From Lenisia limosa (Eukaryota; Protista; Breviatea), in NCBI GenBank assembly GCA_001655205.1, contig LPNZ01005834.1, positions 1 to 61,552 of the forward strand: DNA of 61,552 nt, read 5' to 3'. Of the stretch, positions 6,001-30,350 are shown one piece after another. The notes beneath the pieces are model-generated. The model worked only from the letters and a program-made list of their open reading frames with translations. It was not told where the DNA came from and did not search any database. Position 1 is the first letter of the stretch; each line of letters starts with the position of its first letter. The translations under genes and the position numbers were made by a program.

Positions 6001-9000
6001 GAGCTCAGGGAAGAAGCAGGCGTTATTTCCAGCGCTGTTGAGAGCGCATTCATCAATGTCCACGCATGACGCGGTGTATGAGTCTCCAGAGAACCCATCA
6101 GGACAAGGGCTGCATTCATAGTAGCCTTCAAAGTTCGTGCACGTGACAGCTTCCTAGAAAAGTGAGCGTCTTGACGTCATACCAGTAGGTCACAGCCACC
6201 CTTGTTGGTTGCGCATTCGTTGATATCATCACAAGATGTCTTTCCTGGGGAGTTAGCGATGCTGCAGATGGACAGGCCCAGTGCAACATACCCGTTCCAG
6301 AGTAGCCAGGAGGGCAATCAGTGCACTCAAACGTTCCAGGGAGATTGGTGCAGTTTGTGAGGGAATGGCATTGAGTGGGGTTGCATTCGTCGACGTCTGG
6401 AGATGAGACCAAAAAAGAGACCACCAACCATCACAAGCCGCTAAGTCCGCATTGAGGAGATAGCCGTCTTCACAGGAGCATACGAAGCTTCCAGGAAAGT
6501 TCGTACAGATCTAAAGCGGTCATCACGGCGGGCATAACCCTGAGCAACCTGTCCGCAATTGTCGAGTTCGTCGGTACATTCGTCGATGTCAAGACAATTG
6601 TCCGCGTTATCCGGGTCAACAATGAAGCCGTCGTTGCACGTGCACAGGTAGCCTGGAACGAGATCCTCGCATGTCTGNNNNNNNNNNCAAGTTCGTACAG
6701 ATCTAAAGCGGTCATCACGGCTGGCATAACCCTGAGCAACCTGTCCGCAATTGTCGAGTTCGTCGGTACATTCGTCAATGTCAAGACAATTGTCCGCGTT
6801 ATCCGGGTCAACAATGAAGCCGTCATTGCACGTGCACAGGTAGCCTGGGACGAGATCCTCGCATGTCTGGGGGGGGGGGGNNNNNNNNNNCAATTTCAAC
6901 ACATTCGTTGATGTTGGTGCACGTGTAGCCGTCACCATCGAATCCTAGGATGTGAACAAACACGAAAGGAGCTCACCATTAGGACAAGGCTTGCAAGAGT
7001 CCGTGGTTTGCGTGTAGATGACAGCCAACTCAAAGAGCTCGCTTGCCGAACCTCTCAGTCCAATGAACGGCTGCGACGTTACGCTGACCAACAGGAATGA
7101 GGCAAACCTGGGTGACGTTGCCGGTGAGAGTGGCCGTTTTGTAGTTCGGGAGAACAGACGTGCTTGGTTGCACTGCGTCTGACGCTACAGCGCATTAGAA
7201 CCACCCAAGGAACATGGCAGTAAACGTGATGCACTCGCCGCCTACGAGCTACTACGCCAACAACTTCCCAAACAAAACNNNNNNNNNNAATTTCAACACA
7301 TTCGTTGATGTTGGTGCACGTGTAGCCGTCACCATCGAATCCTATGATGTGAACAAACACGAAAGGAGCTCACCATCAGGACAAGGCTTGCAAGAGTCCG
7401 TGGTTTGCGTGTAGATGACAGCCAACTCAAAGAGCTCGCTTGCCGAACCTCTCAGTCCAATGAACGGCTGCGACGTTACGCTGACCAACAGGAATGGCAA
7501 ACCTGGGTGACGTTGCCGGTGAGAGTGGCCGTTTTGTAGTTCGGGAGAACGGACGTGCTTGGTTGCACTGCATCTGACGCTACAGCGCATTAGAACCACC
7601 CAAGGAACATGGTAGTAAACGTGATGCACTCGCCGCCTACGAGCTACTACGCCAACAACTTCCCAAACAAAACTGTCGTTGGATTGGACCACTTCGCCCG
7701 CCCTGAAAAGTAAGATCAAGAGATCCCGCGGTCAAACCAGTCCACAGCGGCGGCGTAGAGGACATGTGAAATAATAGGGACTTCATCGCTGCCAGCCGAG
7801 GCGATCTGAACTGCAAACGTTGTGTCAGCTGAAAGTCAGAGAAACCAAGCCACAAGTCAACTCACCATCCAGCGCCACACCCGGGGTGGTGATGACCTCG
7901 TCAATCAGATTGGCGATGGAGGGAAGGTCCTGAAGTTCACACACGGTGATAGGTTGGTTGACCAGTCTGAGACGGTCCAGAGCAAAGTCGAAGCAAGTTN
8001 NNNNNNNNNTCAAGCCACAAGTCAACTCACCATCCAGTGCCACACCCGGGGTGGTGATGACCCCGTCAATCAGATTGGCGATGGAGGGAAGGTCTTGAAG
8101 CTCGCACACGGTGATAGGTTGGTTGACCAGTCTGAGACGGTCCAGAGCAAAGTCGAAGCAAGTTATGACGTTGGCGGTGGGGGCAGTTGTGGGCCAAAGC
8201 TCGAGGGCGGCTGGCTGAGATGGTACCAGACATGTGGTATTTTGATATGGCAAGAGATACATTGTCGTGTTGTCGGGATGTACTTGTTTTATAATGTTCA
8301 TCTTGAGGGTTAGAGGACCTGAGGAAGCAAAATGAGGATTGTTGACACCCACCGTTCCATTGAAAATGGGAGTACAATCGGTCACTAGCACAGTGACATT
8401 GATGGGAATGATAGTTTCAATAAGCTGAAGGGTGAAAATCGGAACAGTTCAGTTTAGAACATACCTCAGTTTTGTTGACCAGCTCAGTGGTGTTGAAGAA
8501 AACAGTCTCATTGACCAAGGAAGTAACGTTTTGCATTTCCCATGACGGTCCGGGTAGAGTCTGGATGGTGAGAGGTCAAGAGTAACATACGACGTTGACA
8601 AGGTTGGTGACGTTGACAAGCTGAGTGGTGTTGTGAAGAGTCGTAACGTTGACCACAGTCGTGACATTGTTCCACTGGCTCTCGGTACCGGGTTCCGTGG
8701 TGTTGTACGACACACAATCCTGGGGGAGGTCCTCCACGATGATGTCCTCCAAAGTGGTACTGTTGACAAGAACAGTCACGTTCACCGGTGTGACATCGTA
8801 ACACTCAGTAATGCCTGGTGGGGTCAGAAGAGAAATGACATAATAACACCCACCATCGAGGAAAACGAATTTGCCATATTCCACGGTGTTGAGCAGGCTG
8901 GTATCCTGGGGTACCCAGCATCCCTCGATGCTGGTGGGGACAACTTCCATGTCCATGGTGGTGGAGGAGGGATAAGTCACCTGAACTGTCAGACACGTCC

Positions 9001-12000
9001 AACACCAATGACACCCACATTAACCCAGTTGTCGACTGGAAGACACGCAAACGCAAGAGGCGTANNNNNNNNNNCGGTACCCAGCACCCCTCAATGCTGG
9101 TAGGCACAACTTCCATGTCCATGGTGGTGGAGGAGGGATAAGTAACCTGAACTGTCAGACACGTCCACCGCCCAATGACACCCACATTAACCCAGTTGTC
9201 GACTGGAAGACACGCAAACGCAAGAGGCGTAGACGCAAGACGATATGGCGTCACATCGGACAGACATCCTGACCATTCACTGCACGTACCTGCCACACAT
9301 TTCTCGTTTGTGACTGCGCATTTGCCATCAATGACATCGTAACCCTTAAAAGGTGACGAGTACATAAAGAACAAACCTGGACACAGCCGCAAGAATGTGA
9401 GCCTGCTTTGTTGGTGCNNNNNNNNNNCATCAACTAAGAGATGATGAAGGTCAGTGAATAAGGCCACGACGTCCCGCGGGCCTACCACAAGGGTATCTGT
9501 CATCACCGTCAGGATGGTAGAAGCCACTGTTACAGCTGCATTCATAGTCTCCAATCGTGTTGTTGCAATTGTGCTGGCAAATCGAAGATCCTGTATACAG
9601 GCCAGCTATAGAGTGTCAATGAAAACAAGATAGTCCTTCAAAAAGCTCCTTCCCACATCCAGCGTCCAAGGTTCCGCCATTATCAAGACACTCGTTGTCG
9701 TCGTTACAGGCAGGTCCGTCAGCTGTGAAGCCACTCAGACAGCTGCAGGACCAGAATGGATCTTCGTCTGTGCAGATCTGCTGACAATCGTCGAGACCCT
9801 CAGCGCACTGAAGACGTCAGAACCGGGCATTAAAGACATTCAGCATGGTATAACTTCACTCACCNNNNNNNNNNCGCTTCGTCAGCTGAAAAGCGGTACC
9901 CTTCGTTACAAGAGCACGTGTATGACCCAACTGTGTCCGTGCTTGAGGGTAAAACGGATTAATAAAGTCGTGATAAACTCTCCACCCACATACCAAACTT
10001 GGGCATTGACACAAACAGCCGGACTGAAGCCAACAGCACACTCGTCCACATCTACAGTGTGAGTCAACCTGGGGTGGACAAACTTTGACAGTTGGTGCCG
10101 TCGTCATAGTAGCCGTCGTCACACTCGCAGTCGTAAGAGCCGACCGTGTTGACACCTGAAAGTAAGCAACCACAAGGCATAGCGTACAATGGGAGTTCGG
10201 ACGACAAGAGGCAGTGAGTAACGTGCATTCGTCAAGGTCCTTGCAGTCATTGTAGGGTTTGCTAGTGTCTAATTCATAGCCAGCAGGACAGGGAAGGCAT
10301 CTACAGGTGAGTGACAGCAAAAAGAGCCCACTCCCATGAGGATTCGCTGATCGAGTTGCAGTTGTCCTGGAAACACGTGCCACACGGGTCCACGCGGCCG
10401 ATAACTTGAACCTACAGACAGTGTAAGAAAACAACTGCGGAATAACAGGAAGGCTGTTCGACTCAGTACCTCATTAGCCACAACTGTGGTGTAAGTCTTG
10501 GCATTTGTGGACATGAGCACCAGGTAAGAGGCCCGGGCATAGACCTGAATTAGTTATTTCTGGTCGTGGTGCTGACAATTTGTTGCTTCAGAAATACGTG
10601 AAAAATTATCAATTTTTGGTCACTATTTAATTTGGTTTTGACAATTCACCCCCACCTCTCCCCGAGACCCACCGGGACAACAACGTAGAGAGAGTGGCCA
10701 AGGCCGACGGTGTTGGAGTAGAGAACATCAACCTCCCAATCGGCCTGATCCGCAACGTCCGTGGTCGAAAGGAAGGCCTGCGTCTTGCCGTAGAGTTTGA
10801 GCTACAGAGAGTCAGCGTTCCAGGTAATTGAGATAAAGCTCTGAAGCACCCTCCCTACTGGTAAGTAGTCGGAGACACTGATGAAATTACTAGATTTGGG
10901 GAAGATGAAGCGCACCACGTCAATATAAGCCGCATAAGAGGTTGTGAAACGGATAGATGCCTAAAAAGAGTCAAATGGTCAACAACCACTGTCCATACCT
11001 TTCCGTTCATTCCAACACTGAATTGCCCGGTGAAACTGTTCGAATTGTAGTCCATGTACTCAACTTGGTCACTCAACTATTCTGTAAACAAATACAAAAA
11101 AAAAGACAACTTTCGTCAATTGCTAACCAAAAGGAAACTCTAAATATCAGCCCCCCCCCCCCNNNNNNNNNNNNNNNNNNNNNNNNNNNNNNNNNNNNNN
11201 NNNNNNNNNNNNNNNNNNNNNNNNNNNNNNNNNNNNNNNNNNNNNNNNGGGAATCATTTCTGGAGAGTGAGGCAAAGAAACTCGAAACAGCAAAACAGCA
11301 TCATATAACTGGCCCTCCAACTGGGGTAGATCATCCAGTGAATTTTGAAGTTTGCGTTGATGTTATCCGAAGATTTCCTTTCAATAACCGAAATATCGGC
11401 TCCATCAACCCTCGTTCTGAGAACAACAGTCTGAAGATTGAGGTCCCTTTGTCCGTGCTGGGTGTCAGCAAAAACGACCGGTGGGAGACTGAGCTGGACA
11501 TCCCACGAAATTGACACTTTTGTTTGATGTGTGCCGGGGTTGGCGAATTCCGATGTAACACCTGCAAAGTCAAAACACTATCTCTCTCAAAAGTGGCCAA
11601 GAAACAAACCGGAAAAGCCATCTTTGGGCCGTTGGAGGAACGCATAATTGGCAGGGTCATAGTAGTTCTTATAGTGGCTGTCACGATAAACCAGTTCGTT
11701 CTCCCACTAAAAGTGTTAATCCATCTTTTTAGGAGGCCTCAAATTCCTACCTCATTGTATCTCATCTGAGGGTTCATGAAAACGCGACTACTACTGTAGT
11801 ATGTGTACGAATTAACACCAATAAAGTTGGCATTTCCCTAAACTGTCAAACGGAAGAATACTCGGATATTTGGTGTACTAAACAGAACCCCACAAACATT
11901 AATAAAAGTCGACGGTAAACTCTCCTGGCTAGTACTCGCAAACCCTGCGTAGTAGTATTCTGAGGGGTGAAGTCAAAAAAATCCGAATAAAAGCTTACCA

Positions 12001-12659
12001 AAAGCGTTCTGTGCTGTTGTGGGACACATTTTGTGCCATGTCACGGTGCCGACATAGTGGTCACCGGAATGAGGCCTGGTGAATAAGCGCAGAACACAAT
12101 ACTTCATTACATCATTGAAGTTCAAACTCCTCTTACTCGTAGTAGAGGTTTTCACTGTGCGTATTGTAGATAAAAAAGGCTGAGTCAGAAACAGCAGAAG
12201 TGTATTCCATCTGAGCGGCAATTAATCCAACACGAAGGAGAAAAAAATGGTATAGGTTGTCATCTGGTTTTCTTTTTTTTCAATCCAAGAGGTTTAAAAT
12301 TATAAATATTAAAAAAAACCTTCTAATGTAAAAATCTACGGAATTTAAAAACTTCCGAAGGTGAAAAGTAGTGCAAGATCTTGACAACTCATAACCCACA
12401 ACAACAAAAAGTTTGATTAGTTGACAAACCTGAACAAAACATCCTTGACCAATTCCTGTACCTCCACAGTTTGGCGTTACTACATAGGTAAAGGAATAGC
12501 AACTGGGCAGACAACTTCAAAGAAGCAGACTTGAAAATAGCCGACAATCAGAAACAAGCAAAAAGTCAATCCCTGGATACCTTTGTACGAAAATGTAAAA
12601 CTAATAACAAATGTAAGCCATAGAGCAAGGAGAGCGGTAATGGGCGGCATTTTGGCCAT
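1..12659 (-). CDS. Giant Cys-rich cell-surface receptor/adhesion protein, copy A (many exons, 3' end outside window). Order: signal peptide, unknown beta-rich N-terminal domain, EGF/cbEGF repeats, NxT-rich stalk, DxDxDG motifs, laminin-EGF and GCC2/GCC3-like repeats, start of a membrane region
   Basis: Signal-like MAKMPPITALLALWLTFVISFTFSY at ATG 12659. Spliced exons give cbEGF motifs (CLDIDECTDELDNC, CIDIDEC, CKDLDEC) and CLPCPAGRFS/CEPCPAGSF repeats. Hydrophobic YLLILMIILIFIVGAILL then ASITVGFNFVQ at about 15-215. Interrupted by 10-N gaps with duplicated flanks. Confidence 0.85.
1507..1535 (-). repeat. Intronic (GAACT/GGACT)n pentanucleotide microsatellite; similar run at about 4936-4973
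   Basis: Plus strand gtccagtccagttcagttcagttcagttc lies inside the short intron GTGAGAG...GAATTAG of receptor copy A. Confidence 0.8.
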
Positions 12660-13014
12660 TTGAGAGAGCAATCAAACTTTAATTGAACCCAAGTGAAGGC
12701 CAAAAGGCATCAATTCAGGCGCTATACCACAGCCATGTAAAATGCAGTCTGATTATACCGAAATTAAAGGCATTAACGCTCTCAAATACAAGATACTACC
12801 GCACAATGCACTACACTCCAATAAACTTATCAAATATTATGTTGATAGTTTTAATAAAGTACAATTGGGTTAAGTCTTTGTCAAAAAGTAAAAATTGATT
12901 CGTTTTCACGAGTGGCATTTTTTCCATTGGACACCGCATTTCCCGTCCCGGGTTACAAAAAAACAAAATGAAAAAAAACTATTCTTCTAGAGCAAATACT
13001 CAAGGAGGAAGAAG
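12660..13014. promoter_or_regulatory. Probable bidirectional promoter between receptor copy A and GCAT
   Basis: About 355 bp between divergent ATGs at 12659 (-) and 13015 (+). No specific element is assigned. Confidence 0.4.
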
Positions 13015-15292
13015 ATGTCATCCGTTGCTATTGCTTCTGCAGTCTCTGTGGCCAGGCCGCAGTTTGTTCGATTCCTCAGTGCCGCTTCTGTTGCGCGTAA
13101 GGCCGATTTGGCATCCTTCCTTCAAAAAGAAATTGATGGTATCCATGAATCTGTGAGAGGAGACAGTTTTAATCTTATGAAAGTGATCCTTTGCCTTGCT
13201 GACACCATAGGGACTTTTCAAGCGCGAACGTGTGATGACTACTGCTCAGTCAGCTCATGTTAAGACTGAAGAGACCGGTGAAAGAGATCTTATTATGATG
13301 GCGTCTAACAACTACCTCGGTTGGCTTCTCCCGCTTTCGATCCCCTTTTTTTCCTTAAAATATAAAATATAGCTTGCATACAGTTGCATTCCTGTAAATC
13401 GAGTTATTTTCATTTTCCCCGCAGGACTCTCCGACAACAAGAAACTTATTGAAGCTGGAAAGCACCGAATGGACACACATGGCCTTGGACTTGTAGGTTG
13501 TTGTCTTTATTATTTTTGTTGAATTGTTTTGACTTCTCAGGCCTCTGTTCGTTTCATTTGCGGTACTCAAGATATTCACAAGCAACTTGAGCAAAAAATC
13601 TCGGCTTTCCACGAGAAGGAAGACACTATTCTCTACGGTGTAAGCATATATCAAATTATTTTGCATATTGGTAGTGTGTTTGGGTGTGTGACTTCAAATA
13701 GTGCTTTGTTATACCTTCTAATCAGGCATGGCTTCCCATTTTGAATTAGATATGTTAATCTAGAATGTTCATGTGCTGATCCCTTCTTCTTCTTTTTTTT
13801 TTCTCTCCTTTTTTCCTTCCCTTTACCTTCCTTCAGAGCTGCTTCGATGCCAACGGTGGTATCTTTGAGGTTCTCACCAACGAACAAGATGCACTCAGTA
13901 CGCTGGCCTTTCTCCCTCCCCCCACCTCCCATCCGGATTACTCTAACCTGTCCAGTCTCCGCCTCTCTCAACCATGCTTCCATCATTGACGGAATGCGTC
14001 TGTGCAAGAAGCCCAAGAAGGCTTTCTACCAGCATCTTGACATGGATGGTGCGTTTATTTTCCAGTTGGACGACTTACTCCGCAGAGCTCGAACAGCGCC
14101 TTGTCGAAAATGAGGACCGCCGCATCCGTCTCATCGTCACTGACGGTGTCTTCTCCATGGATGGTGACATTGCCCCTCTTGACAAAGTTGGCAAGGCGTG
14201 TAACCTAGCCACCCCACCCCACTTTATTCTACCCGGATATGGACTCATCACTCTAGATCTGCGACCTTGCTGACAAGCACTCCCGCCCCGGCCACCCCGT
14301 CCTGACTTTCACCGACGAGTGCCAGTACGGGGGCTCCCTTAGTTTTATTCACTCCCTGCCCTCCACGGTATTGACTGTTTAGTGCTTCCGGATTCCTCGG
14401 CAAACGCGGCCGCGGTACCCCCGAGCTCATGGGCGTCATGGACCGCATCGACATCATTAACGGAACTCTCGGCAAGGCTCTTGGCGGCTCAACCGGCGGC
14501 TACACCTGCGCCTCCAAGGAGCTCGTCACCCTCCTTAGGTTTGCCTGCGTTCGATTGGTACTAGGGCTTCACTTCTGTTCAAAAATAGACTGAATTTCTC
14601 CTCGACATCTATCGATTTTACCGGTATTTTTTGAACCGAAGTGAAACCCTAATTGGTACCCTCTTTTTGTTCGCACAGTTACCGCATGTTGCTAATCTGC
14701 CCAGACAACGCTCTCGCCCCTACCTCTTCTCAAACTCCATTGCCCCTGCCGTTGCCGGTGCCGGCATCGAACTCTACGACAGTGCGCCGGGCTGTTTAGC
14801 GTCATAATGGCTCAGCCCAGTGTCTTGAACCCAATGTTCTTTCATCTTACCCCCTAGTGCTCATGTCTAGCAACGAGCTCGTCGATAAACTCCAGGAGAA
14901 CACCCACCGCTTCCGGTTCGTTTCCTTGCCAATCCTCCTGCTCTAACTCTCGCAGTACTCAGATGAAGGCTGCTGGCTTTACCATTTCCGGACACGACAA
15001 CTGCCCCATCTCCCCCGTCATGCTCTACGACGCCGTTCTCGCCTCCAAGATGGCTGACGACCTCCTTGAGCGTGGCGTCTTCGCCATTGCCTTCTCCTTC
15101 CCTGGTATGTGTCAAGAATGTTGCGGTTAGACTATTCCTCTCTTGTCGTATTCCCTTCCTCACGTCGCAGTTGTCCCCAAGGAGCAAGCCCGTATCCGCA
15201 CCCAGCTCTCAGCCGGTCTTTCTCTCGACGATGTTGACTTTGCCGTCAACGCCTTCATTGAGTCCGGCAAGAAGTTCGGTGTCATCAACTAA
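13015..15292 (+). CDS. GCAT: Glycine C-acetyltransferase (2-amino-3-ketobutyrate CoA ligase), mitochondrial, multi-exon
   Basis: Spliced motifs [60 protein letters not shown] (PLP lysine), [19 protein letters not shown]. Ala/Ser/Arg-rich presequence. TAA at 15290-15292. Confidence 0.95.
14562..14651. mobile_element. 90-bp hAT-type MITE inside a GCAT intron
   Basis: Left TIR TAGGGCTTCACTTCTGTTCAAAAATA versus reverse complement of the right end TAGGGTTTCACTTCGGTTCAAAAAATA. Perfect 8-bp TSD ATTGGTAC at 14554-14561 and 14652-14659. Confidence 0.85.
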
Positions 15293-15417
15293 GCTAAGTG
15301 GCCCGCGCCACTCCTCTGTAATGCATGGAATACTATACTGATTTCAAGTTTTGGTGAAACATTACAAGAACCTGAATTAAACGTAGATAAGAAAACACAA
15401 AAAAAAAATAGAACATA

Positions 15418-18400
15418 TTAGCGCTGTTGGGCTGTGAGTTGCCGGTGTTGGCTTGGGGTAATCAGTCCATCACCTGCAGGGATGAAAAAATTGTGAAACA
15501 CAAAAATAAAAATACTCTGGAAAACTCACCCAGAAGGGCATCGAAATTTGAGAGCATCTTGTCTCGAAGCTGTGACACTTCTCCCCGAAGCGACTCAGCT
15601 GAATCGTTGTTACAAATATATTATGTATCAAATCAGGACAGTTGAGAAATGCAAGATGTTCCTACTCTCTGGGTCCGGCTTGGAGGGCTGGAAGGACCGA
15701 GCGAGCTCAATCCTAAGATGTCAAGTAGGCTCAAACAGATACACAAGGAAACGCAACTCACATTCGGGTTCTGTCATCGGGAACCTGCGACACTATTCGA
15801 TGCCCTGGTTTATGAGAAAAGCAATAAGATTAACTCAAGAAATGGAAAGAAACCGTAATGATACCTGAAGGGGGGTAGTTCATTGGGGGCTGTTGCACAG
15901 GCTGCTGGGGGTAACTCGGCGGCACTTGCGGTGCTAATTGGCTTGTTGTCAAGGGCGAGGGTTCCTACGGTATCAAAAAAAAAAAAAAGACGGAGAATCA
16001 TCAATAATCATATGGCTCAGAAGTTCAAGCTCACCTTTTGCATATTGAGAGCATTGAACGTCAGATGTGTGCCTTTTCTTGGGCTGCTAGTTGGTCGCGG
16101 GCTGTGGGACTCACCACGAGGACTTCGGGGCCCTGAATAGATAAGCTGAAGTAATTCAAAAAAAAAAGTCACTGAGAAAGAGAAATACAAAAGCCAACCA
16201 GTGGCCAGTGGAGGAGCATTTGCTTCCGGAGCTACGTGGCTCTGGATAACCTGCAACAATGACATCACAGATTTAAGTTGTAATCACACTCCCCAAATTG
16301 AAGACCCCAACATTCTGATTCTGCCACTTCAGCTGTTTCTGCGCCATGATCTCAGCCCGGGCCTGAAGAGCCGAAATCTCATGTCTTGCAGCATCCAATT
16401 GCCCGTCCTTGTTCACTAATTGCTTTTCAAGGTCTGAACCGTCAGATTACCGGAGCACCACCATTTGCTACTGTCAAAGCACCCCAACCTTCAATGAGAG
16501 CGTCTTGCTGCTTATCTTGAACAGAAAAGCTAAATGATCCGTTAGATTACAGCACCAACAGTGAAGTTCACTCTACCCCTTACATTTCGCCTCCTGCAAG
16601 ATGGTTTGTCAGTCTAATGACTTCATCTGTTAACAGTGTGACCTCATTTCGAAGCCTCTTATTGTCCCCATCTAATCGTGATGCCTGGAGAGCGGTGAGG
16701 TAAATGGGGAATATGAAATGAAATGAAAAACTGAAAAACTGCAAAGAGCAAAAGAAAAGCCCTTGATTGAAGAATAGCGTCAACAAAGAGGAAACAAAAA
16801 TGCACGAAGAGTATTGAGATCCAAATCTTGAGTCAACACCGCTCAGACATCATCTTTGGCCTTTTGAGTAGCTGCCGCCATCTTAGAATCTTGTTTGGAG
16901 TCGTTATGGGCAGAAATAGCCAGAAGCCTTTCCAGCTCTTCAATCTTCGCTTTGTCTGCTTGACGCCTAGGCAATCAGAAATACTCGGCCAATCACAACG
17001 TACTTAGCTAAAGCCCGTGCCTGGCTCTTTTTGATGCTTGCCATTTCAACCTCCATGTCACTCACTTGCGCTGCCGCAGCCTGGAGGTGAATCACGCGTT
17101 CTGCCTACTGAAGTGTCTCGGAGCTGTCTTGATGCCGCCATTCGGTCTCTTTCAACCCGTCGAATTGCCCCATCTGAACTGTTACCTCGCAAAAAGAACA
17201 GTGACAAACCTCGCTTTTTGATAGTGGCGTGGAGCTTTTCTATTTCCCTCTTCAGTTGATTGATTTCTGTGTTTTGTTTCGATATGGTACTATCCATCTA
17301 AAACAATACGTTAGATAGGTAAACTGTCTTTTCATAGCTGTACACCACCCACCACATCCTTGTGAAACTTCAAACTATCAAGGTCAGAGTCAGCTTTACG
17401 CAGTTCCTCACGCAAGCGTGAGATTTCAGACTTGTCTTCCTAAAAAGCGTTAACAGTCTCTCAAATCTGCAGCAATTCCAACCTCTCGGTTTTTTCTCAT
17501 TTCATCAATGCCATGCCCAGAGGTTACTGTGGCTAAAAATGGTTATTCTGAAGCTCGCTGAGAAGGAACTCGGAACTATGCAACCGACGGCCTATCGATC
17601 TGCGGTTAATTGGGAAAGTGATTCTATTGATTTTTATGCCCTTATGATATTTTATCAATTAAAAAAGGTATTCCGTGTATGCTCTGTTTGGACCCTTACA
17701 TTCCACACATACTGAATAACAGAGCCAACTCGTCTCGCTCAGCTTCAGCCTTGGCCTAAAATGGTCACAAAAACGTAACCTGTAGTATCTACGACTGGTA
17801 AAATAATAATGGCTATAAGCAGCCCTCCCACCACTGCTTCCTTCAACTGTTTAACAGCAATGAGCTGTGCGCGGGTTTCAAGAATCTCATCAAGGTCCCT
17901 TGAGGGTGAGAAGACAAGGTAACATATAAAAATGGAAGCAACTCACCCGGCATCTCCGTTCTCAACGTTTTGGTTGGCCATGAGGGAGGCGCTGATGTCG
18001 AATCGGTCCCCCTGAAATGTCAAAAAAAAAAAGATATACTGTTCCTAACATAATATAATATGACCTTTTCTTATCTCCTTTTGTTTTTTAAATTACCCCA
18101 CCCCTGACCGAAGAAACAGCACTATGTGAAAGAGACCCCTGAGAAACTGCTTTTGGAAGGGGCTGGATTGTAAAGAAATATGACTTAAGATCAAACCTGT
18201 GATTCAGGGTAAATCTGAGTATGGAGAGGGTCGGGCTTGGGTTGGGGATTCTGGGGGCTTAAAGAAGTGGGTCGGGATACGTTCTGTGGACGATGCGAGA
18301 CATTCACTTGAGAATAACGGGAGAAAGTTGGGGAACTATGTTGTGTGTGGCTTTGGCGGGCGATTGTCGGGTGGTCTTCTTGCTGACATGGGGCATGTCT

Positions 18401-21040
18401 TTCACTTGTTGGATGGCTGAATGACGTGTCATTTGGGACGACTGCGAGGAATGTCGGGTGTGATTGGGGATGATGCGAATTATGGACCGGACGTAATCGA
18501 GCCAAAGAGCTGACAGATTCCTGGCCATGTCCAGAATAAGGTGATGTTGGCTCGGAAATCTGGTATGACGCTGCGTTCTGCAGACTTTGCTGATAATGTA
18601 ACGGCGGCTTGGTGACAAAGAGGGCCGGATCTTCAAAGGCCTCGCGGGGAATTATGGGTGGTAACTGCGAATTACTATCAGGGCAGTGCTGCGGCTCCAC
18701 TGGTGGTTCAGGTTCACTCTGCAGGATTAATCATTGCTGTTTCTTGTTGCAACAATCGACGTTTCAAAGGCCTTACCTGCTGTGGTACATAGCTACCATT
18801 TGCCTCAGGAATAGGGAGAGAAAAGGTGGGAAGAGGGTTCCTGGATAGTTAGTTTCCGATTTTGATCAGAGGTTCGCCTCAAGAAACCAACTTCTTCTTT
18901 TGTGGTAGTTTTTTGAGGAGTGATGTTGAGAGTATTGATGAGAGAGTTGGAAGAACTTGGCTCATTGTAGGCGGTACCATTAGTAGCCACGAGGTGTTAT
19001 CTAATAATTAGTCAAGGATATGTTGTGAACGGATATGAAGCTGATATCCTAATGAAGAATGTAACGGCTAAGAAAAACAAGGCGTGAATTTGTAAATTGA
19101 AAAAATAGGAATCATTATTCTCCTCTATCCCATATAACTTTCAAATAGTGTTTTTCTACCGTTAAAACCAACCATGGTCCGTGAGAGCAGGTCTGAGAAC
19201 CTGTGTTAGCTTTGTGCGGTGGAAGGATATTGACGGGGACTTTGTTGAAACTACATCATGATATCACCATCCTTAAAAACAGTGTTTCCAAGCTTTACTG
19301 CAAAAAAATTGGAATACACCAACGTGAAGATATGATGGAGTGAAGCATCGTAAGGTCAACGGGTGCCGCCTTTGGTTTTGCTCTGAAATCGGATGGAGGG
19401 GGCTGTTGGGAAGGGAAATTAAAACAGAACAAAGTGGTTCTTTAACACAATAAATCAGCACACTCAGTGGAAATTTCATTGTCCAAAAACACGACCACAT
19501 TGCCTTTACGATTCACCGAACTGCTCTTTTTCCAAGGAACCAGTCTCACCTGAGCAACCGTGATGAAATCAAGTCTTGAACTCAGAATGGAGTCCTTCGC
19601 CTGTGACTCTTGTTTTGGAAGGGGTGCTGAAGGAGGGACCGGGGCGGAGGAGCCCCAGGGTCGGGGATGGGATAGTTTGGGGTCTATTCGACTTTCTGTG
19701 AGCACTATGCTGTAAGAACAACGAGCAGTTTCAAGAACAGAAAAGCAAACCAGTAGCAGCATTCAAAGATGGATCGGGGTTTGTCAATTGCTGCTCAACT
19801 GTGATAGAGAAAACATGGTGATTGTGTCGAGATGAGAGCCTTCGACTTCTGAAAGAGGTCAGAAAATTTCATTCAATTGAATCTCAAAGGCTTCACTTAG
19901 GTACAAAAAAGTCCTTTCTATCAATATTAACTATTAGGAATTCTCTGACTGAGACCAAAGTACCACTCTATTTACTGGGCCAAACCCGGCCAAACGTTTG
20001 GAAAGCAATCAAAGCATCCTCCAGAGTACGAGCTTGAATCTCCTTCAATCCCGCAACACTGGGTATATTAGTTGGCTGAGTTACCATTCACATTCAAATG
20101 TTTCTTGGTGCTCACTCACCTAATTCCATTTTTCTTATCAGTTCTAAGACGAAGTTTGATAGAAGAAGGGGCTTCAGGATCTGTGAAAAGATCTTGGAGC
20201 CCTTCTTTTCCAATCTAGGGCAAATAAGGGGTGATTTTGAATTATTCATTTCAAAGATTTAATAAGTTTACTTTGTGTATGTTACTTCTTCAAAGAGAGA
20301 GCCCTGTCACCCACTCACTTCGTACCACGAGAGCCACAACGTACAAGTGAACGCACGCTCTTTCGGTGCAGAAGCTAATTCTTGCATTCCTATTGCCGTC
20401 AAATTGTTTAAAGGAAAGAAATATTTGAAAACAAGCTATTGAGAGAGAGAAAAAGGGAGTTGTTTCCAAGGGATGAGCCAAAACCACTGACGGTTAAATA
20501 ACGATCGAAGAGTGAGCGGTATAATTCCAGGAATCTCCTTGGTTCCTAAGCGATGTTAGTAAGCTTTTTGCGCACAATACAAGAACTTGTCCCTTATATA
20601 ACACTACACCAACCTTCTAAAAGCCATGCTTTTGCAGTGCCAATAGTATCATGGATCACAAAAACCTGTCGGTTGTTCTGATCGTTATGAAGATAGGTAA
20701 TAACCTTACTCCAATGGTATTCTCAACGCGGGGATGGACCAAACTTGAATAAATATCGTGCTGAGTGGCCATACAGCTATAGGCAGCATCGAATACAAAC
20801 CTATAGAAGGTAACGGAAACACCAATTATATTTCCAATGGCTAATAATAACTTATTTTTATTCATACCGTCTTGATTCAAGCCTTGATTTATCTTGGAAG
20901 ACCTCAATTGCTCCCTCATCTCCAACCACTACGCTAACTGAAGCTAAAATGGTAAGAAAAATTGTTTAAATTGCTGGAAATGACATACAATCATCAACAG
21001 TGACCCCAGGAAGGGGCTGGAGAGAAACTCCTACTAACAT
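15418..21040 (-). CDS. Kinesin-like protein with degenerate motor domain, Pro/Ser/His-rich linker and long coiled-coil tail (start approximate)
   Basis: Spliced motor landmarks in the correct order: VGVSLQPL, RFVFDAAYSCMATQHDIYSSLVHP, EGTKEIPGIIPLTLRSLF, VAGLKEIQARTLEDA, HVFSITVEQ, SRLDFITVAQ, ISFHRTKLTQVLRPAL. Then coiled-coil exons (EINQLKREIEKLH, DLEKQLVNKDGQL). Stop at 15418. Joining motor and tail into one gene is by manual splicing. Confidence 0.7.
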
Positions 21041-21387
21041 AGTGGCCCAAATGGCTTTAGTAGCCTTAACAAGTTGTTTATCTAGTTTCTACTATGGCTA
21101 TACTACTATATTTTGGCTGTATTTTGGAAATCAATTGGGAACTTTTTAATGAAAATACTTTTCACCCACAAAAAAGATCTACTGGATCTGGATCACCCCA
21201 CTTTCCTTTTATAGAAAGTGACTGCAAGCCGAGCCTGGAGCCCGGACTGAGCCCGGATGATTTAACACGCAAGTTTGAACTTGATACATAAATCCAATAT
21301 AGTGAACTTATTAGTGAAAGTATCTTAATTACGCCATCGCCCGTCAGCTTCTGTTATTTGTGAACACTCTTTTATCGAATTTCTCAA

Positions 21388-22482
21388 ATGTGCTTCAGCT
21401 TCGAAGTATCTTTAACAGCAGCAGTCATCTTAACTGGTGCCACGGCATATTGTTTGAGGTTTATTGAAATGTTTTTTTTTATTTTTGTTTTTTGATAGTT
21501 TTAGATTCAGTCAGATTACCATTTCCAAACCACATGTCATTTCACATTCCAGGCCTTTATCTCTCGAAAAGAGTAAATGAAATACCGTTGGCACTCATTC
21601 CCTTGTTCTTTTGCCTCCAACAATAGTATGGCAAATTTCTTTGTCATATTTTTTCTTACCACCCAGCTGTGAGGCAATGATATGGCACCTTTTACAGGAC
21701 AAAAACAAAACGGCCGAAGACAAAGCCGTGGAAATGTCAACTTGGGCGTTCCTGGTAGTGGCGTTAATGATATGGCCTTTTTGGATACCTATGAGCCTTA
21801 TGGTTGTTGAGGTAAGGTGTTTGTTCATTGTATGACCCTTTAGCATTGTCGTAGCAGATGGCTTGCAATGTTCCCACTGTTGATTACCGGAATAGCGGTT
21901 ACATCATACTTCATCATCGCAACCGAAGCCGAACCTGTGAAGTACGTTCACAGATCATGATATCTTACCATCCAGAGTTTCTGAAGCAGATCACCACATC
22001 AGCTACGAAATCACATTTTTCCGTGATTCGGATACGTATACGATTATTGCATTCTACTCCTTAGCTGTCATCCCGCCATTTTTCATTTCTTCGAAAAAGT
22101 GGGGTGGTATTCAATCATCATTTTGCGCCATGTTATATTAGTCTACTAACCGGCCAGAAACATGCCAGTCCTCGGAGCCCTCATGCTAATCGGCTACTTT
22201 CTGGCTTTATTCATTTACGAAGAACATTTTGCAAGTGTCTGGTGTATGTTTGCAGCATACACGTCAGTGCTCATCATGTGGATACTCTACGGAATGCGTA
22301 ACGACCATCATCCGATGTACCGCCCTGCCTGGCTCTTGTGTGACGAAGGCCAAGAGGAATCGGAGCCTCAGGCCCCAATTCAAGTTTGCCATGCTCTCAT
22401 CTATGTTCTATGGGGTAGTAGATCTCCTCTACTACCCCATGGCGCATCTGTCACATTCTGTCCCATTGTTCGGATTTTGTGA
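21388..22482 (+). CDS. Multi-pass membrane protein of the bacterial-type MCFS...SVWC family (DUF6629-like), with introns; 3' end approximate
   Basis: MCFSFEVSLTAAVIL at 21388, EIPLALIPLFFCLQQ|YCEAMIW, WPFWIPMSLMVVE, FASVWCMFAAYTS. The family name is from memory of these motifs. Confidence 0.65.
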
Positions 22483-23179
22483 CACATTCAGGTCATTGTC
22501 ATTTCCTCTCCTCGGCTCAAGAATCCCGTACCACCTTCGATCAGAACCCTTAGACCTGAAATCGGTCTCACAAAGTAAGCACGCAACTCAAGCTCACCCT
22601 CTAGGTCGCAACCCACAACCCCCGTCATATCACAAGCTCCAATTGACCACCACTACCCAATGACTCCAACTGCGCTCAACTGTCCGTCACTTTATCGGAC
22701 ATATCATGGTATTAGGGATCCCATCCCACACTACCAGTCCATCATATTTAGACAATACTTGTCAATCCAGAGTTTGGTTTTAAACATTTTAGAGCCGATT
22801 CGACAAAACATCCAATACGATAAGTTGTACGGTCACCTACCAGTACCAGTCAATAAGCCTCCACCATGAAATACTAACTTCAGACTGTTGTGTTTTGTCT
22901 TATAGCTGTTCAACTTTCATGAAGAAATATGATATGTTTTGATACCATCTCAAAAAAAGATAACTAACATGATCATAACTATCATTACACATGATCCTGA
23001 GACCTTCTTTACACTTCCTTGAAAAAACTACAACTGGTTATGTGACCATGACTATCAGGACAATAGTATACTACCACATTTACTCGATGAAATCATGATA
23101 CATCGCAAATGGACCAAAATATTTCAATTCTCATTTGCTTATGCATAACACAATAATTGCAACCTGGGTGAAATTGAAG

Positions 23180-25872
23180 TTAAAATTCAATGACTCCTGA
23201 TGATGAAACAATGGCAATTTGAGATAAAATATCCCAGCCAAGCCAGGCAGCTAAAGTAGACACTGGCTCCACGTTCTTTTCAACTATTTCTTGAGGAAGA
23301 AACTACAAGTGATAAATACTAAGTCACAACCAACCAACCTCGAAAGGAATCAGCATAGGAGACGGTTTCAGAAGAAGAAGGTTAAGTTTGCCTATCTTTT
23401 CTACATGTTCAATATCATATTCTATCTGGGAGAGCAATTCAGGTTCACTTACCTTGTAACAAAGGGTCCTTTCTGATACAATCAATTATGGTATATTTTG
23501 ACCCCACATGCTTTGATACTCTGTCTTTTGACTCATTATGTGGAGGCTTATCTGAAGTGTGAGATCCCTAGCCCCATGAATGTGAAATCGCCAAGTTGCA
23601 ATTCCACCATCCTCACCATCAGCTAGTCTACAGTACTTTTCTTGGTCAATCCGTTTTTGGACAGCTTCGGATAAGAAATGCCAGGAAAATTCTTCCGGAC
23701 AAAGTAGTTCAGACGGGCAGTAGTTCGCTTTGTAGCGCATTTTCGGGCCTGAAAATAACACCTTGGAGAAGAGTAATACACTTACAAGATGAAATGTAGT
23801 ATCCAAAGTAGTAATGTTGACAGTTCAGACTAAGTGCTAAAGACGATTCGTAAATTGCAGAGTATGAGCCCAAAGACAGGTCTTTGTGGGTACTACATGG
23901 GTAAAAGTATAGTTTCATAACTCCTTACGAATCATAAAAGAAGTAAACGGATGAAAGGACATTTGGAAGGAGATCAAGAACTCCAACCGCAATCAACTGG
24001 CCATTCAAAACATAACCTTGGAGAGTTATCACTGCTAAATTGAAACTGCCGTACGTAAATGGTAATGTCCAAAAGCCTTCTCCTCTGACGATTCCTGCCC
24101 CATTCTTCTTTTGCCACTCGCTGTGGGCTGAAATGCTCAGAGAATGCAAGTACAAAAAACAACATACTGTTGGTGCCATAAAAGGAGAATCACACAGAAA
24201 TCTGGTATACTGTTTCGGGGTCAACTCCTCGGGTTTATCATGGTGAACCTCGGCCTTTTTGGTCAAATAAACAAATAAAACACCCATCAAAAAGTTTCAT
24301 TCTCCTCAAAAATATCACTATGTGAGGACTGAGGCCTGATTTTCTTCAAAGATTCACCATACTTGGTACTTGCAATAAAGTTGAAAAGCATCCTCTTGAA
24401 ATTTGGCTGGCACAAGGGTAACAACAAGGTTGTTCTCGCCCCCAGCCGGAGAAAGAGATAATGGGAAGATACCTACATAAATCAGCAATAAGTTTTATTT
24501 CTGGACAAATACGAAGCCCATCATATGATGAACTACAATAAGTAAATAGAAGTACTACTTTTGATAGATTTGGAATAACCACATCATGAAGGCGTATATC
24601 AGTGGTGAAAAATTATGATATATTCCACCCCAAGAATAGTACGGCAGAGTTTCCCCTACTTTTGAGAGGCGATTTTGGGGGAGCTTTTTTCTTTTTCTCT
24701 CGTTTCGTTGTCTGGACAATAAGAATAAGGACAAGCAAGAAAATAAGAGATGGGTAAGAATGACAATAAGAGATGGGTAAGAATGAAAATAAGAGATGGG
24801 TAAGAATGAAAATGACAAAGTCCTTTATGTAAAGAGCTATCACGAGGCCAACTGGATAGAACTTCCCGTCCTCATGTATTGAGCCTTCCCTAAAGTTCTT
24901 GATTTTGTGGCTTTTGAGTCTAGAGAGGCTACCTTGGCTGCATTCTTTGTTGCTTGACCCTATATTGATAAATAGGAACCTGTCAAATCGTTGACCACAA
25001 AATTCTGGGATGCTGAGTGACGACATACCTACAAACCATTTCACAGTCAAAATGGCGCCCTTCTACCACAATTTATCCAAAGGACATATAGCTCTGGTTT
25101 GCCTTTATCTGTAATGATGCAATTTTGTTATATATTTTTTTTGCAATTTTGGAATGAATATTGACAGCAGTATCTAGTGAACGCTATGTTTATTGTCAGG
25201 TGATCAAAGCGCATGGCCATTCTTAGTTTCTAGAACTTCTTATGTGGCTGAAATATATGTATGATTTATAGTACACTACATGTAGATAATTATCTCATAT
25301 ATATAGCTCCTCAAATGCATCAAGGTGAAGAAATCAACAATATTCGTGATTGATCTGCAATAATTGGTATCATGTACATATATTATGTGCCCCAGACGTT
25401 GTTGTGGAGGCAGCTTTTCTGGTGCCTTTGGAACCGTTTTGCTTCCAGTTAGATACTTGGTCATTTTCTAAATAGGTCACAAGGTCGCGAATTAATCATT
25501 TGAAGCATGGCCTACTTTTACAACGTTTTTCTGGGATTTTGACAGTTGTAAGCGTTGAACGTCAAGGCGAATGGTGTATTGGGGGCAACAAGTCATGGCA
25601 TTGTCAGGGAAGTATACTGCATGGTGTAAAGAGAATATTTATAAACAAGAGACTATGTAACGAGCTAATAACACCCATCCCCAGTCACACTACAATCCCC
25701 CCCCCCCACCGTAATTGCCCGAACGCCTTCCTCCACGATTGATAATGTCCAAGTAGAGCTCAGGCGTGAGCTTGTGGAAATACACCCCGAAGCTTCGTGA
25801 CCCTACGTCTGACCCGCAGTATCCACAATGGTGTGCACTGCCCCCAGTGACTTCACCAATAGCATCCGTCAT
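23180..25872 (-). CDS. ATE1: Arginyl-tRNA--protein transferase
   Basis: HCGYCG, RG(G)RRSGNY, TCCPQYTIRLD, YTRFLCDSP, GQLIAVGVLDLLPNVLSSVYFFYD, SLGSYSAIYE, YYYFGYYI, MRYKANYCPSELLCPE. TAA at 23180-23182. Confidence 0.92.
24742..24810. repeat. Three tandem copies of a 23-bp unit in an ATE1 intron
   Basis: AATAAGAGATGGGTAAGAATGA(C/A) x3. Confidence 0.9.
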
Positions 25873-25981
25873 GTTGTATGTATGGTGGATGGTGGGGAAC
25901 CTCTCCCCAACCTTTTTTGTGGCTATTGTTGTATTATTGTTGTGTTTTTCTTCGCTGGTTTGGGGGGGGGGNNNNNNNNNN

Positions 25982-28900
25982 AGACAGACATCCTGACCAT
26001 TCACTGCACGTGCCTGTGACACATTTCTCGTTTGTGACTGCGCATTTGCCATCAATGACATCATAACCCTGAAAAGGTGATGAGTACATAAAGAACAAAC
26101 CTGGACACAGCCGCAAGAATGTGAGCCTGCTTTGTTGGTGCACATTTGGGGGCAATCTCCGTTATTCAGTAAGCACTCGTCGGTGTCAGCTAAGAGATGA
26201 TAAAGTCAGGCAATAAGGTAACTATGACGTCCCGCGGGCCTACCACAAGGGTATCTGTCGTCACCGTCAGGATGGTAGAAGCCACTGTTACAGCTGCATT
26301 CATAGTCTCCAATCGTGTTGNNNNNNNNNNGGTGTCAGAGAAAACATGATAGCCATTCAAAAAGCCCCTTCCCACATCCAGCGTCCAAGGTTCCGCCATT
26401 ATCAAGACACTCGTTGTCGTCATTACAGGCAGGTCCGTCAGCTGTGAAGCCGCTCAGACAGCTGCAGGACCAGAATGGATCTACGTCTGTGCAGATCTGC
26501 TGACAATCGTCGAGACCCTCAGTGCACTGAAGACGTCAGAACCGGGCATTAAAGACATTCAGCATGGTATAACTTCACTCACCTCATTGATGGGGTCACA
26601 TCTGCCGTCGGCTTCGTCAGCTGAAAAGCGGTACCCTTCGTTACAAGAGCACGTGTATGACCCAACGGTGTCCGTGCTTGAGGGTAAAACGGCTTAATAA
26701 AGTCGTGATAAACTCTCCATCCACATACCAAACTTGGGCATTGACACAAACAGCTGGACTGAAGCCAACAGCACACTCGTCCACATCTACAGTGTGAGTC
26801 AACCTGGGGTGGACAAACTTTGACAGTTGGTGCCGTCGTCATAGTAGCCGTCGTCACACTCGCAGTCGTAAGAGCCGACCGTGTTGACACCTGAAAGTAA
26901 GCAACCACAAGGCATAGCGTACAATGGGAGTTCGGACGACAAGAGGCAGTGAGTAACGTGCATTCGTCAAGGTCCTTGCAGTCATTGTAGGGTTTGCTAG
27001 TGTCCAATTCATAGCCAGCAGGACAGGGAAGGCATCTACAGGTGAGTGACAGCGAAAAGAGCCCACTCCCATGAGGATTCGCTGATCGAGTTGCAGTTGT
27101 CCTGGAAACACGTGCCACACGGGTCCACGCGGCCGATAACTTGAATCTGGGGGGGAGGGGTGAAAAATGGGGTGGGGGGCACAATTTTGGTAAGGCAACA
27201 TGGGTAAGAAGGTCTCAGAGAACAATTGAAAGTCTAATACCTCATTGGCGACAATAGTTGTGTAGGTATTGGCATTGGCAGAAAGAAGAACCAAGTATTG
27301 GGCACGTGCATACACCTGAAGATAAGAATAGTAAACAACAGAAAACAATTCAATGAGAGACATACTGAGACAGTGAGGTAACGCGAATGGCCAAGGGAGC
27401 TTGAGCTGTAAATGTTTACATCTTTCACCCAATCAGCCTGCTCTGCTACGTCAACGGTATTCGAGAATGCTGTAGTCTTTCCGAAGAGTTTCAGCTGAGG
27501 AGTGAGGAAAAAAGCAGTTGCATTACAATTAGAGGAAACGAAGACCCACAGGGTAGTTGTCCGCAATGTTGATGATGGAGCTAGAAGTAGGGAACACAAA
27601 ACGGACCACGTCAACATAAGCAGCGTAGTTGAGAGAGAGTCGGATGGATGCCTTAACCATGATGATTTTGATCCGCCAAAAACGGTATGATTGATATTAA
27701 CTATGACGCAATGAAGCAGTTCGTCGGGTACAGGTAGAGAATACAACATATTAGAAGAGCAATTCGCACCGACATCATCTGACCAGCTCAACCACCTACC
27801 TTTCCACTGATTCCAACACTGAACTGCCCTGTGAAGACGTTACTATTGTAGTCCATGTACTCAACTTGGTCAACAAGCTACATTCAATTAGATGGGCACC
27901 ACTCCCTCCCTGCCTACAGTGCTGACAGTGCCGCATGTTGTCGAACCTGAACCACAACTTGCAGTGAACGGAATGATGTCTATGACAATCAGCAGTACAA
28001 GGAGAGTGAAGGCATACAACAACAGCAAACCCCCATCATACTTGGGTAGATCATCCAGTGAATTTTGTAGTTGGCGTTGATAGTTTGGCCGGGGATGTGC
28101 TCAAAGACGGAAATATCAGCTCCGTTAACACGGGTGCGCAGAATAACAGTTTCCAAATAGAGGTTGGTGTCACCGTGTTGCGTTGACGCAAACACGACAG
28201 GTGGCAGACTCAGGGAAACTGTCCATGAAATCGACACTTTGGTTTGGTGGGTATTTGATTTTGAGAATGAAGTAATTCCTAAAGAGTCAAGAAGAAGCTT
28301 TCATGACAGAAAACATTTCAATCCCCCAAACCTGCAAATTCATCATCCGGCCTCTGAATGAAAGCAATATTCGTGGAGGCCGCGTAGTTATCATAACGTT
28401 TGCTGCGCCAGAGATTTTGAACTTCCCACTACAGAATTACAAGCTGACCCTACGTGCACAAAGACTAAATTGGTACACCCACGTTTGACGTTCTCAGTTG
28501 AGGGTAGATAATGTCCTCATCGCCTTTGTACCATCCGTAACCATTGGTCCCAATGAAAACAGGCTGAAGGGTGAGCTGGGCACAGAAAAAAACTACTCGA
28601 AGCTGGATTAAATTTGAAAAACAATGTTCATATAGTAAAAGATTTGTGCAATTTTTCAATTCCCCTTGCTGTAAAATACGTAATTACTGCAGCAGAAAAG
28701 TTCACCAAAATTTGACAGTAATTTTTTTAAGAAATAAAAGTCTGTTTAAGATTTCTTCGAAATGAAAAACAAACAATTGGCAAGGGCAATAATCAATTCA
28801 ACTGTCACTGCCCAAATATTAAACCAACATAGCTTACGTTATTAATGGCAAATGGTAAGGCTGTAGACTTGGTAGAGCTAAATCCGGCGTAGTAGTACTC

Positions 28901-29635
28901 TAAACAGTGAATTTCGGACTCATTGAAGAAGAGAACATACCAAAGGTATTCTGTGTTGCAGCTGGGCAGATTTGATGGTAGATGTAAGAACCAATATGTC
29001 CACCGCCCGAATGCCTAGAATTGTGAGCCAGCATTCGCAAATGTTTTAAACTGACTCGATAAAAGACTTCTGGGAGTGTATGTTGTACTCAAAGTAAGCT
29101 GTATTGGCAACCGTGGCGGTGTATTGGGCCTGTGGAATCAGAGAATGTCGAGAATAAATAAGATGCCAATACCTGGATTGCAAGAATTTAAGCAGATAAG
29201 AAGATGGGGAAATGGAAAAAAAAGCCAAAATAAATAAAAAAAGTAACACTATTTCAAAGAGAATCAACCCCAGCATTGTATGATTGGATTAGTTGGAATC
29301 ACAACAGTAAAACAGGATGAAATTCCTGGAACTGTATGATTACCACTAATGACAAGATACATAAGAAGGTTCCTGCCTACCTGCACATAGCACCCTTGTC
29401 CAAAGGAATTTCCTGTGTTCAAAGAAACTACAGAGGTGAGTTCTGGCACTAGTAGGGAGCCAATATGCCAATATTAAAACATAAATTACTGATAAATAAA
29501 GCAAAGCTATCATCGGAAGGCTTCTAGAGTTCAGAATGGAGATTGGAGAAAAAAAAACATGTTAAACAAACCGTAATAGGCACTTGTTAAGGACACAATA
29601 GTGCATATTATCAACAGATTAACTGCTGAGAGCAT
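25982..29635 (-). CDS. Receptor copy B: paralog of copy A. Signal peptide, N-terminal domain and first EGF modules are present; truncated at an assembly gap
   Basis: MLSAVNLLIICTIVSLTSAYY at 29635. Exons homologous to copy A with shared intron positions (GQGCYVQ/GQGCFVQ; SISWTVSLSLPPVVFA/SISWDVQLSLPPVVFA; DQVEYMDYNSN). 25982-27145 is nearly identical to 9260-10410. Confidence 0.8.
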
Positions 29636-29917
29636 TGTTGGAGGAGAACCTGAGATTTTGTCACCAATTCATACTCCCCAAGGGTCTAAGGTTCGTTGCT
29701 TTCTCTTATTTCTCAGTTTTACTTACTAAAGACCACTAAAGAACTTACAACCTTTATTCCTTTATTTTTGAAAAATGTCAAAAATTTATCTGCGGATGAA
29801 TTCAATTTTTCGCCGAATAGCCGATGACCTCCTCCTATTCCTCCAACCCCCACCCCCATTTTGTGCCCCCACTCCGGTGACAACCCTGTGACAACCCACT
29901 GAAAGACAACTGAAAGA

Positions 29918-30350
29918 CAAGGGGCCTCCAATCATGAAAATTAGTATTCCATCAGATTCTACCACCCGCACTCTCCAAAACCCAGTTTCCACCACTGTTT
30001 TCCAGCTGTTTTTGGCATATTCGTTGTATATACATATACATATATAATAATTTATAATTAGACCTAATTTGTACCTAATAAGTACCTAATTACATAACTA
30101 CACATAGCTACTCAATGACTCAACTGTGTCTGCTGTGACTCAACCGAAGAGACTCAGTCCAACAACCCCCCCCCCCCTTTTTTTTTTTNNNNNNNNNNNN
30201 NNNNNNNNNNNNNNNNNNNNNNNNNNNNNNNNNNNNNNNNNNNNNNNNNNNNNNNNNNNNNNNNNNNNNNNNNNNNNNNNNAAACTCGGTTTCCACCATC
30301 CACCACTATTTGACTGGTGAAATACTAATTTCATGAGTGGAGCCCCCCTG
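29918..30350. mobile_element. hAT-type MITE (about 430 bp including an N gap), second family
   Basis: Left TIR CAAGGGGCCTCCAATCATGAAAATTAGTATTCCATCAG versus right TIR (reverse complement) CAGGGGGGCTCCACTCATGAAATTAGTATTTCACCAG. Perfect 8-bp TSD CTGAAAGA at 29910-29917 and 30351-30358. Confidence 0.8.

Follow-up and report, generated by a model that had tools for sequence, protein, structure and literature searches.

The window analysed here, the whole stretch of 61,552 nucleotides of scaffold C5834 (contig LPNZ01005834.1) in the 49-Mb Lenisia limosa assembly GCA_001655205.1 of 11,727 contigs, carries two genes, copy A and copy B, in which divergent 5′ parts (the heads, exons 1-12) are joined to a closely similar body of calcium-binding epidermal growth factor (cbEGF) modules. 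We propose, at a probability of about 0.58, that the two are full-length paralogs homogenised by gene conversion, the body of copy B being mostly collapsed into an assembly gap. Since the silent sites of the heads are saturated and the head introns are unalignable, the sequence supports an old duplication, and an old duplication combined with a young body would point to recombinational homogenisation. Both genes are coded on the minus strand of a eukaryotic scaffold (GT..AG introns, 46% GC), on which the assembly places them 16.7 kb apart with the ATE1 gene between them; their flanks are unrelated and copy B is bounded by gaps. The exon models of both copies were read off the sequence.

The step between head and body

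When the window was compared with itself by BLAST, a single long off-diagonal match was found, joining 9259-10413 and 25983-27148 on the same strand. Global alignment of this segment gave 33 mismatches at 1085 comparable positions (N runs excluded), which is 97.0% identity with introns included. An earlier note on this DNA, made from its letters alone, had placed the two copies correctly. It had also called them nearly identical, introns included, and this is true of the 97.0% that includes introns, but the copies are 3% apart and the introns they share are only 31-56 nt long, about 200 nt in total. The divergence is uneven: 9259-9818 differs by approximately 5% and 9819-10413 by 1.4%, and a run at 10021-10269 is perfectly identical. 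Over exons 13-16 and 18, 7 of 479 bases and 3 residues differ between the copies.

Going upstream, similarity is lost in both copies right at the exon 13 acceptor AG. Exon 13 opens with G in copy A (10411) and with A in copy B (27146), identity running from 10410/27145, and intron 12, which differs in length between the copies (Table 1), is unalignable. The abrupt end of identity at an exon start around these positions, as the earlier note had described it, is sharp and exact to one base. Exon 12, immediately upstream, does encode both of the peptides quoted there; the two versions agree at 20 of 25 residues and 72% of nucleotides, and the proportion of silent sites that differ (pS) is 0.72. 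Each head/body junction lies inside a contig (9875-11162 for copy A and 26331-30188 for copy B), so both junctions are present in reads.

The third-position GC content (GC3) is 0.60 in the homogenised part compared with 0.51-0.54, and intron GC is 0.47 compared with 0.39, values drawn from only 187 codons and 203 intron bases. This rise is modestly in line with what conversion may be expected to leave behind.

The heads of the two copies

The 12 head exons of each copy all have GT..AG borders, matching phases and no stops, and they are homologous exon by exon, with lengths that are equal or differ by whole codons. The first exon of either head resembles a signal peptide. All 12 head intron positions and phases are conserved between the copies, yet the intron sequences are unalignable, and 210 of 368 residues (57%) are identical, the lowest value being 29% (exon 1) and the highest 85% (exon 9). 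These values bear out the earlier description of upstream exons as half to two-thirds identical in protein, with unalignable introns at conserved positions. Summed over the 12 exons, pS is 0.72 (saturated) and the corresponding proportion for replacement sites (pN) is 0.29, which gives a ratio of replacement to silent divergence (dN/dS) of about 0.15; this ratio is rough, the silent sites being saturated and the sequences only two. On these values the heads appear to evolve under purifying selection. Fast protein evolution of a recently duplicated head was rejected, as silent sites and introns are saturated as well.

Exactly two heads were found in the 49-Mb assembly, even at E≤10, with exon 8 used both as a single sequence and as a profile and with exon 11. 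The search for families and homologues of the head, run per exon, was otherwise largely negative. Pfam gave no match beyond EGF families for 20 pieces taken from both copies. An exhaustive phmmer search of 1.84 billion representatives with exon 8 returned one spurious repeat-motif match and no homologue, and a profile search of the PDB returned chance matches only, with E above 1. In the ESM Atlas, the features of exon 8 resembled those of small proteins bearing the H_lectin domain (score 0.90-0.91), a weak lead, and nothing was found with exon 11. The H-type lectin family (PF09458), which includes Helix pomatia agglutinin and the C-terminal domain of discoidin, is like exon 8 in language-model features and, by a low-confidence model of exon 8, in all-beta character, but the family profile misses both copies at E≤10. 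An hmmscan of exon 8 from both copies gave no match, and the 10 places matched by PF09458 in a six-frame search of the genome at E≤10 included none in the A/B gene. The AlphaFold model of exon 8, built from a two-row alignment, is all-beta with a pLDDT of 53 and was unusable for a fold search. With low confidence, then, the head may be regarded as an orphan of about 380 residues that looks all-beta.

In both copies alike, the donor of exon 8 is in phase 1 and the best acceptor of exon 9 in phase 0 (11322/11076 and 28042/27877, minus strand). This clash suggests an acceptor 13 nt further in, or a hidden micro-exon.

Table 1. Positions in the window of the features discussed
Feature	Position	Strand	Description
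Copy A body, continued	1..9258	-	EGF-type cysteine repeats; continues beyond the scaffold start on C3031; 95-98% duplicates flank nine 10-N gaps
Copy A body, first part	9259..10411	-	exons 13 to ~20, cbEGF modules, 31-56 nt introns; 97% identical to copy B
Copy A intron 12	10412..10469	-	58 nt; last unalignable block before the shared body
Copy A head	10470..12659	-	exons 1-12; signal peptide exon 12659-12581; exon 8 11561-11322; exon 12 10544-10470; ~380 residues
ATE1 (arginyl-tRNA-protein transferase) gene	23928-25872	minus	ATE_N 6.8e-6, ATE_C 1.1e-12; between copies A and B
Poly-G run and 10-N gap (25972-25981)	25961..25981	.	cuts off the copy B body
Copy B body, first part	25982..27146	-	equivalents of exons 13-20; two contigs (25982-26320; 26331 onward); ends within an intron at the contig start
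Copy B intron 12	27147..27240	-	94 nt
Copy B head	27241..29635	-	exons 1-12; signal peptide exon 29635-29572; exon 8 28278-28042; exon 12 27315-27241

Two variants of the body in the assembly

Three 10-N gaps lie within the shared segment (9418-9427, 9865-9874 and 26321-26330). Each conceals some 26-50 nt that are present in the other copy, and order and orientation are preserved across all three. The left end of the A/B identity is an assembly boundary and not a biological one, since the copy B contig begins there, at gap 25972-25981, about 25 nt into an intron and directly after a poly-G run.

Two variants of the body, 93-98% identical, can be followed along approximately 15 kb through 13 overlap duplications at 10-N gaps and through overlapping scaffold ends, the gene continuing from the start of the window into a second scaffold, C3031. 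There, C3031:16762-19184 is a 93-96% variant of window positions 1-2309. The overlap duplicates, 92-659 bp long at 95-98% identity, flank 9 of the 15 ten-N gaps of the window and all 4 of those in C3031, and every one of them falls in the body of the A/B gene. Gaps flanked in this way span 2679-9231 of the window and C3031:12736-16821. Stretches common to both variants recur at 100% identity as small leftover contigs, and a leftover unitig of 249 bp (C265) is 100% identical to copies A and B. Contigs overlap by exactly 60 nt, which points to a de Bruijn graph with k=61. The contig of the other variant ends about 27 nt from the start of the copy B contig (8910-9064 corresponds to 9076-9231, and copy B starts at the equivalent of 9259).

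No overlap duplicates were found in approximately 128 kb of other sequence, made up of 50 kb from the remainder of the window, 12.7 kb from the remainder of C3031 and 65 kb from 20 contigs, and 31 of the 32 gaps sampled from 20 other contigs were of the ordinary, variable-length type. Because the duplicates are confined to it, the two-variant signal belongs to the body of the A/B gene and not to the genome; heterozygosity throughout the genome, or a mixture of strains, was rejected on this ground. True tandem EGF repeats were likewise rejected as the source of the duplicates, as the pairs abut the gaps on both sides, extend over 92-659 bp including introns, and there are no other off-diagonal matches. 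The scaffold thus contains false internal duplications, since the overlaps between variants stayed unmerged. The shared sequence is also far longer than the 1.15-kb piece of stalk to which the earlier note had confined it, as the two-variant signal spans the body of about 15 kb, membrane part included.

Proposed homogenised paralogs and the alternatives

We infer that the second variant is the body of copy B, most of which would lie in gap 25972-25981. Copy B would then be complete, and each paralog would encode a large surface protein comprising a signal peptide, an orphan head, a cbEGF array, GCC2/GCC3 repeats, a multi-pass membrane part and a tail rich in Asn, Met, Gly and Gln. Recombination between the copies would have homogenised the bodies from exon 13 almost to the 3′ end, either through conversion tracts of different ages or through one large replacement followed by smaller tracts; a divergence that ranges between 0% and 7% is suggestive of tracts that differ in age. 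Tracts originating in the body would halt at intron 12, the first non-homologous block, which is short and rich in insertions and deletions, and this could produce the step at the exon edge. From short reads, the de Bruijn assembly would have phased only the first 1.15 kb beside each unique head. The rest of the copy B body would have been piled onto that of copy A, giving the overlap duplicates, the leftover unitigs and the overlapping scaffold end, with a 10-N gap left in its place. The upstream flank of copy B has nothing in common with that of copy A and is joined to 30282 onward by a gap of the ordinary type. The earlier note had described an EGF stalk kept identical by gene conversion after an old duplication. 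The old duplication and the sharp step are borne out, and gene conversion or another recombinational replacement would be the natural cause, but the stalk is not identical: it diverges by 3%, and by up to 7% further along.

Several observations weigh against this explanation. For a tract that ends at random, a breakpoint exactly on an exon edge is an event of only about 3-4%. The GC contrast may partly stem from the codon content of EGF modules, and its sample is small. Copy B has only 1.16 kb of body and no 3′ end in the assembly. The gap of 10 N beside ATE1 may reflect a distance that the scaffolder estimated at near zero, which would fit a truncated copy B. The sequence C11665:1-572, which is 85% identical to the Asn/Met-rich 3′ tail (C3031:11944-12536) and is a possible 3′ end of copy B, could equally belong to one of at least three other family members that share the membrane module. 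The phase of the variants may switch between neighbouring contigs, so that the fine pattern of identity may be partly a product of assembly. The evidence as a whole is assembled sequence.

The gap beside ATE1 is also where the idea of copy B as a partial duplicate takes its start. On this account an old head would be followed by about 1.2 kb of recently copied or converted body, truncated near ATE1, in a gene that is possibly secreted or dead, with the two variants along the rest of the copy A body due to local heterozygosity or to a third partial copy. We consider this unlikely, while allowing it some weight: no overlap duplicate flanks gap 25972-25981, which adjoins a poly-G run such as interrupts contigs elsewhere in the assembly, and if its 10 N do mean a distance near zero, the copy B body stops there. 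Two unrelated causes would however be required for one signal, and three variants would be predicted in 9259-10413, where two were assembled. Further, the copy B head has intact splice sites and frames and a dN/dS of about 0.15, which implies long-term constraint; its contig starts within an intron, with no stop or end signal; and the variant contig of the copy A body ends within some 27 nt of the point where the copy B contig starts.

The exact number of variants, two throughout in heads and body, would also be expected if A and B were a single gene with two very old alleles. The heads would then be balanced haplotypes comparable to idiomorphs, the 2-7% variation in the body would be linked heterozygosity, and the copy B haplotig would have been misplaced into a nearby scaffold gap. 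Such an origin would suit the make-up of copy B, which consists of just two gap-bounded contigs, lacks a 3′ end and abuts the start of ATE1; even the absence of heterozygosity artefacts from the sampled rest of the genome is expected if only the balanced locus is heterozygous. It is nevertheless improbable in our view. The 550 bp before the ATG of copy B are unlike the flank of copy A and are joined to 30282 onward by a gap of the ordinary type (31 of the 32 sampled), and the copy A head stands on an unbroken 14.7-kb contig that reaches ATE1. Moreover, identity is at its peak beside the head/body junction (10021-10413 has about 1 mismatch in 130 bp) and declines further away, whereas the opposite trend would be expected around a balanced site.

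A pure misassembly, in which the shared segment exists once and one of the head/body junctions is chimeric, would gain from the state of this region, the worst assembled in the window, with its 15 ten-N gaps and leftover unitigs. We regard it as very improbable, as both junctions lie within contigs, at the same exon edge and each with a proper acceptor. No 60-mer is common to the two introns, yet a chimeric join in a graph with k=61 would require one; there are, besides, 33 differences between the copies. One stalk served by two alternative 5′ cassettes was also rejected, since either head is continuous with a separate copy of exon 13 and 33 sites distinguish the copies.

Comparison with known systems and possible meaning

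If the homogenised pair is real, it provides a clean protist case of conversion that homogenises the stalk, membrane part and tail of a receptor yet stops at a domain boundary. In A and B, near-identical silent sites and introns stand beside a saturated block, the pattern by which regional conversion is recognised. A comparable case is that of TLR1 and TLR6, in which conversion keeps the C-terminal part alike and leaves the ligand-binding part free, as shown across nine species (Kruithof et al. 2007, PMC2077338). These too are neighbouring paralogous surface receptors that are alike on the membrane-proximal side and distinct in the N-terminal part, but in L. limosa the pattern comes from one species, over a block of about 15 kb with dozens of introns, with other genes between the copies and in proteins unrelated to TLRs. 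In the clustered protocadherins of fugu, a divergent 5′ sequence for the recognition domain is combined with a 3′ part whose identity exceeds 95%, the converted part has a higher GC3, and assembly was troubled (PMC1852091; Noonan et al. 2004 cited there). The A/B genes share with these clusters the divergent 5′ part, the closely similar 3′ part and the trouble in assembly, and possibly the higher GC3. The protocadherins, however, have tens of variable exons compared with two genes here, and the A/B head is split into 12 exons, without splicing to constant exons.

The earlier note had seen in the pair a variable tip and a candidate system for diversifying recognition or adhesion, such as allorecognition or the binding of prey. 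An allorecognition family would be expected to have many variant heads under diversifying selection; there are 2 in the assembly, even at E≤10, and pN (0.29) is well below pS (0.72), with dN/dS at about 0.15. A diversification system is not supported, since there are only two heads, these appear to be under purifying selection and they have no detectable relatives, and a role in allorecognition or prey binding likewise lacks support, the head having no recognisable family. Most likely, A and B are a pair of diverged paralogs subject to ordinary regional conversion and not a system that generates variants. It is conceivable, though we would call it decidedly unlikely, that the orphan heads are sugar- or surface-binding modules that give one signalling or adhesion body two specificities, for example for bacterial partners or prey of a breviate that carries epibiotic bacteria. 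Conversion would then keep the body co-adapted while selection separates the heads, and the locus would be a minimal protist version of a constant body with a variable head, built on a fold outside the family databases.

For the assembly, the proposed pair means that about 15 kb of one gene are probably missing through collapse. Gene counts and models in this region are untrustworthy, and they include apparent internal duplications at 2.7-9.2 kb of the window that would corrupt gene models of the stalk. If real, the pair would further contribute an unclassified head, some 380 residues long, on an EGF stalk.

Organisation of the gene body and neighbouring features

The body extends over about 15 kb, on into C3031, through cbEGF repeats, GCC2/GCC3 repeats, a multi-pass membrane part and a tail. 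Exons of the shared segment, searched one by one, match EGF_CA, EGF_3 and cEGF in Pfam. Single exons reach at most 24.7 bits for EGF_CA (PF07645) against a cut-off of 27, because introns split the modules; the translations of exons 13-18 display the six-cysteine pattern DxDEC ... CxC, with the Asp/Asn-x-Asp-Glu-Cys starts visible. Body introns in 26371-27146 (minus strand, exons 13-18) measure 31, 32, 32, 52 and 56 nt, head introns 38-274 nt, and those of the EGF body cut each cbEGF module at a recurring spot, immediately ahead of the cysteine found before the xNTxGSY motif.

In C3031, body exons match Ephrin_rec_like/GCC2_GCC3 (PF07699) at 37.6 and 30.1 bits, with a cut-off of 23.1. They are accompanied by at least four hydrophobic membrane segments, with four or five helices in the portion read, and the membrane exons have no Pfam match. 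The Dictyostelium protein SadA and the Plasmodium CRMPs, protist multi-pass receptors with EGF or cysteine repeats, resemble the A/B genes in having a cysteine-rich, EGF-type ectodomain followed by several membrane helices; PF06011, however, misses the A/B gene. Assignment of the membrane module to a TRP/SadA-like type was rejected, since PF06011 at E≤1 matches four other contigs and not C3031. Paralogs of a membrane-segment exon, at 89-92% protein identity, occur at C9867:1299-1457, C2665:1918-2067 and C10888:1454-1561. Because these three contigs carry the exon without a head of the A/B type, the sequences suggest that the membrane module is common to a small family with other fronts. The predicted low-complexity C-terminal tail, rich in Asn, Met, Gly and Gln, occupies C3031:11888-12385 (minus strand) and ends near C3031:11888; weaker DNA matches to it on several other contigs are, by appearance, of the same low-complexity type.

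Only about 100 bp separate the ATE1 start codon, at 25872, from the poly-G run and the gap at which copy B breaks off. Within intron 8 of copy A there is a gap of 86 N (11163-11248), beside a homopolymer run. Ordinary gaps of variable length are often found at such runs (poly-G/poly-C, poly-A), as at 11150-11162, 25961-25971 and 30180-30290, which suggests sequencing dropout there.

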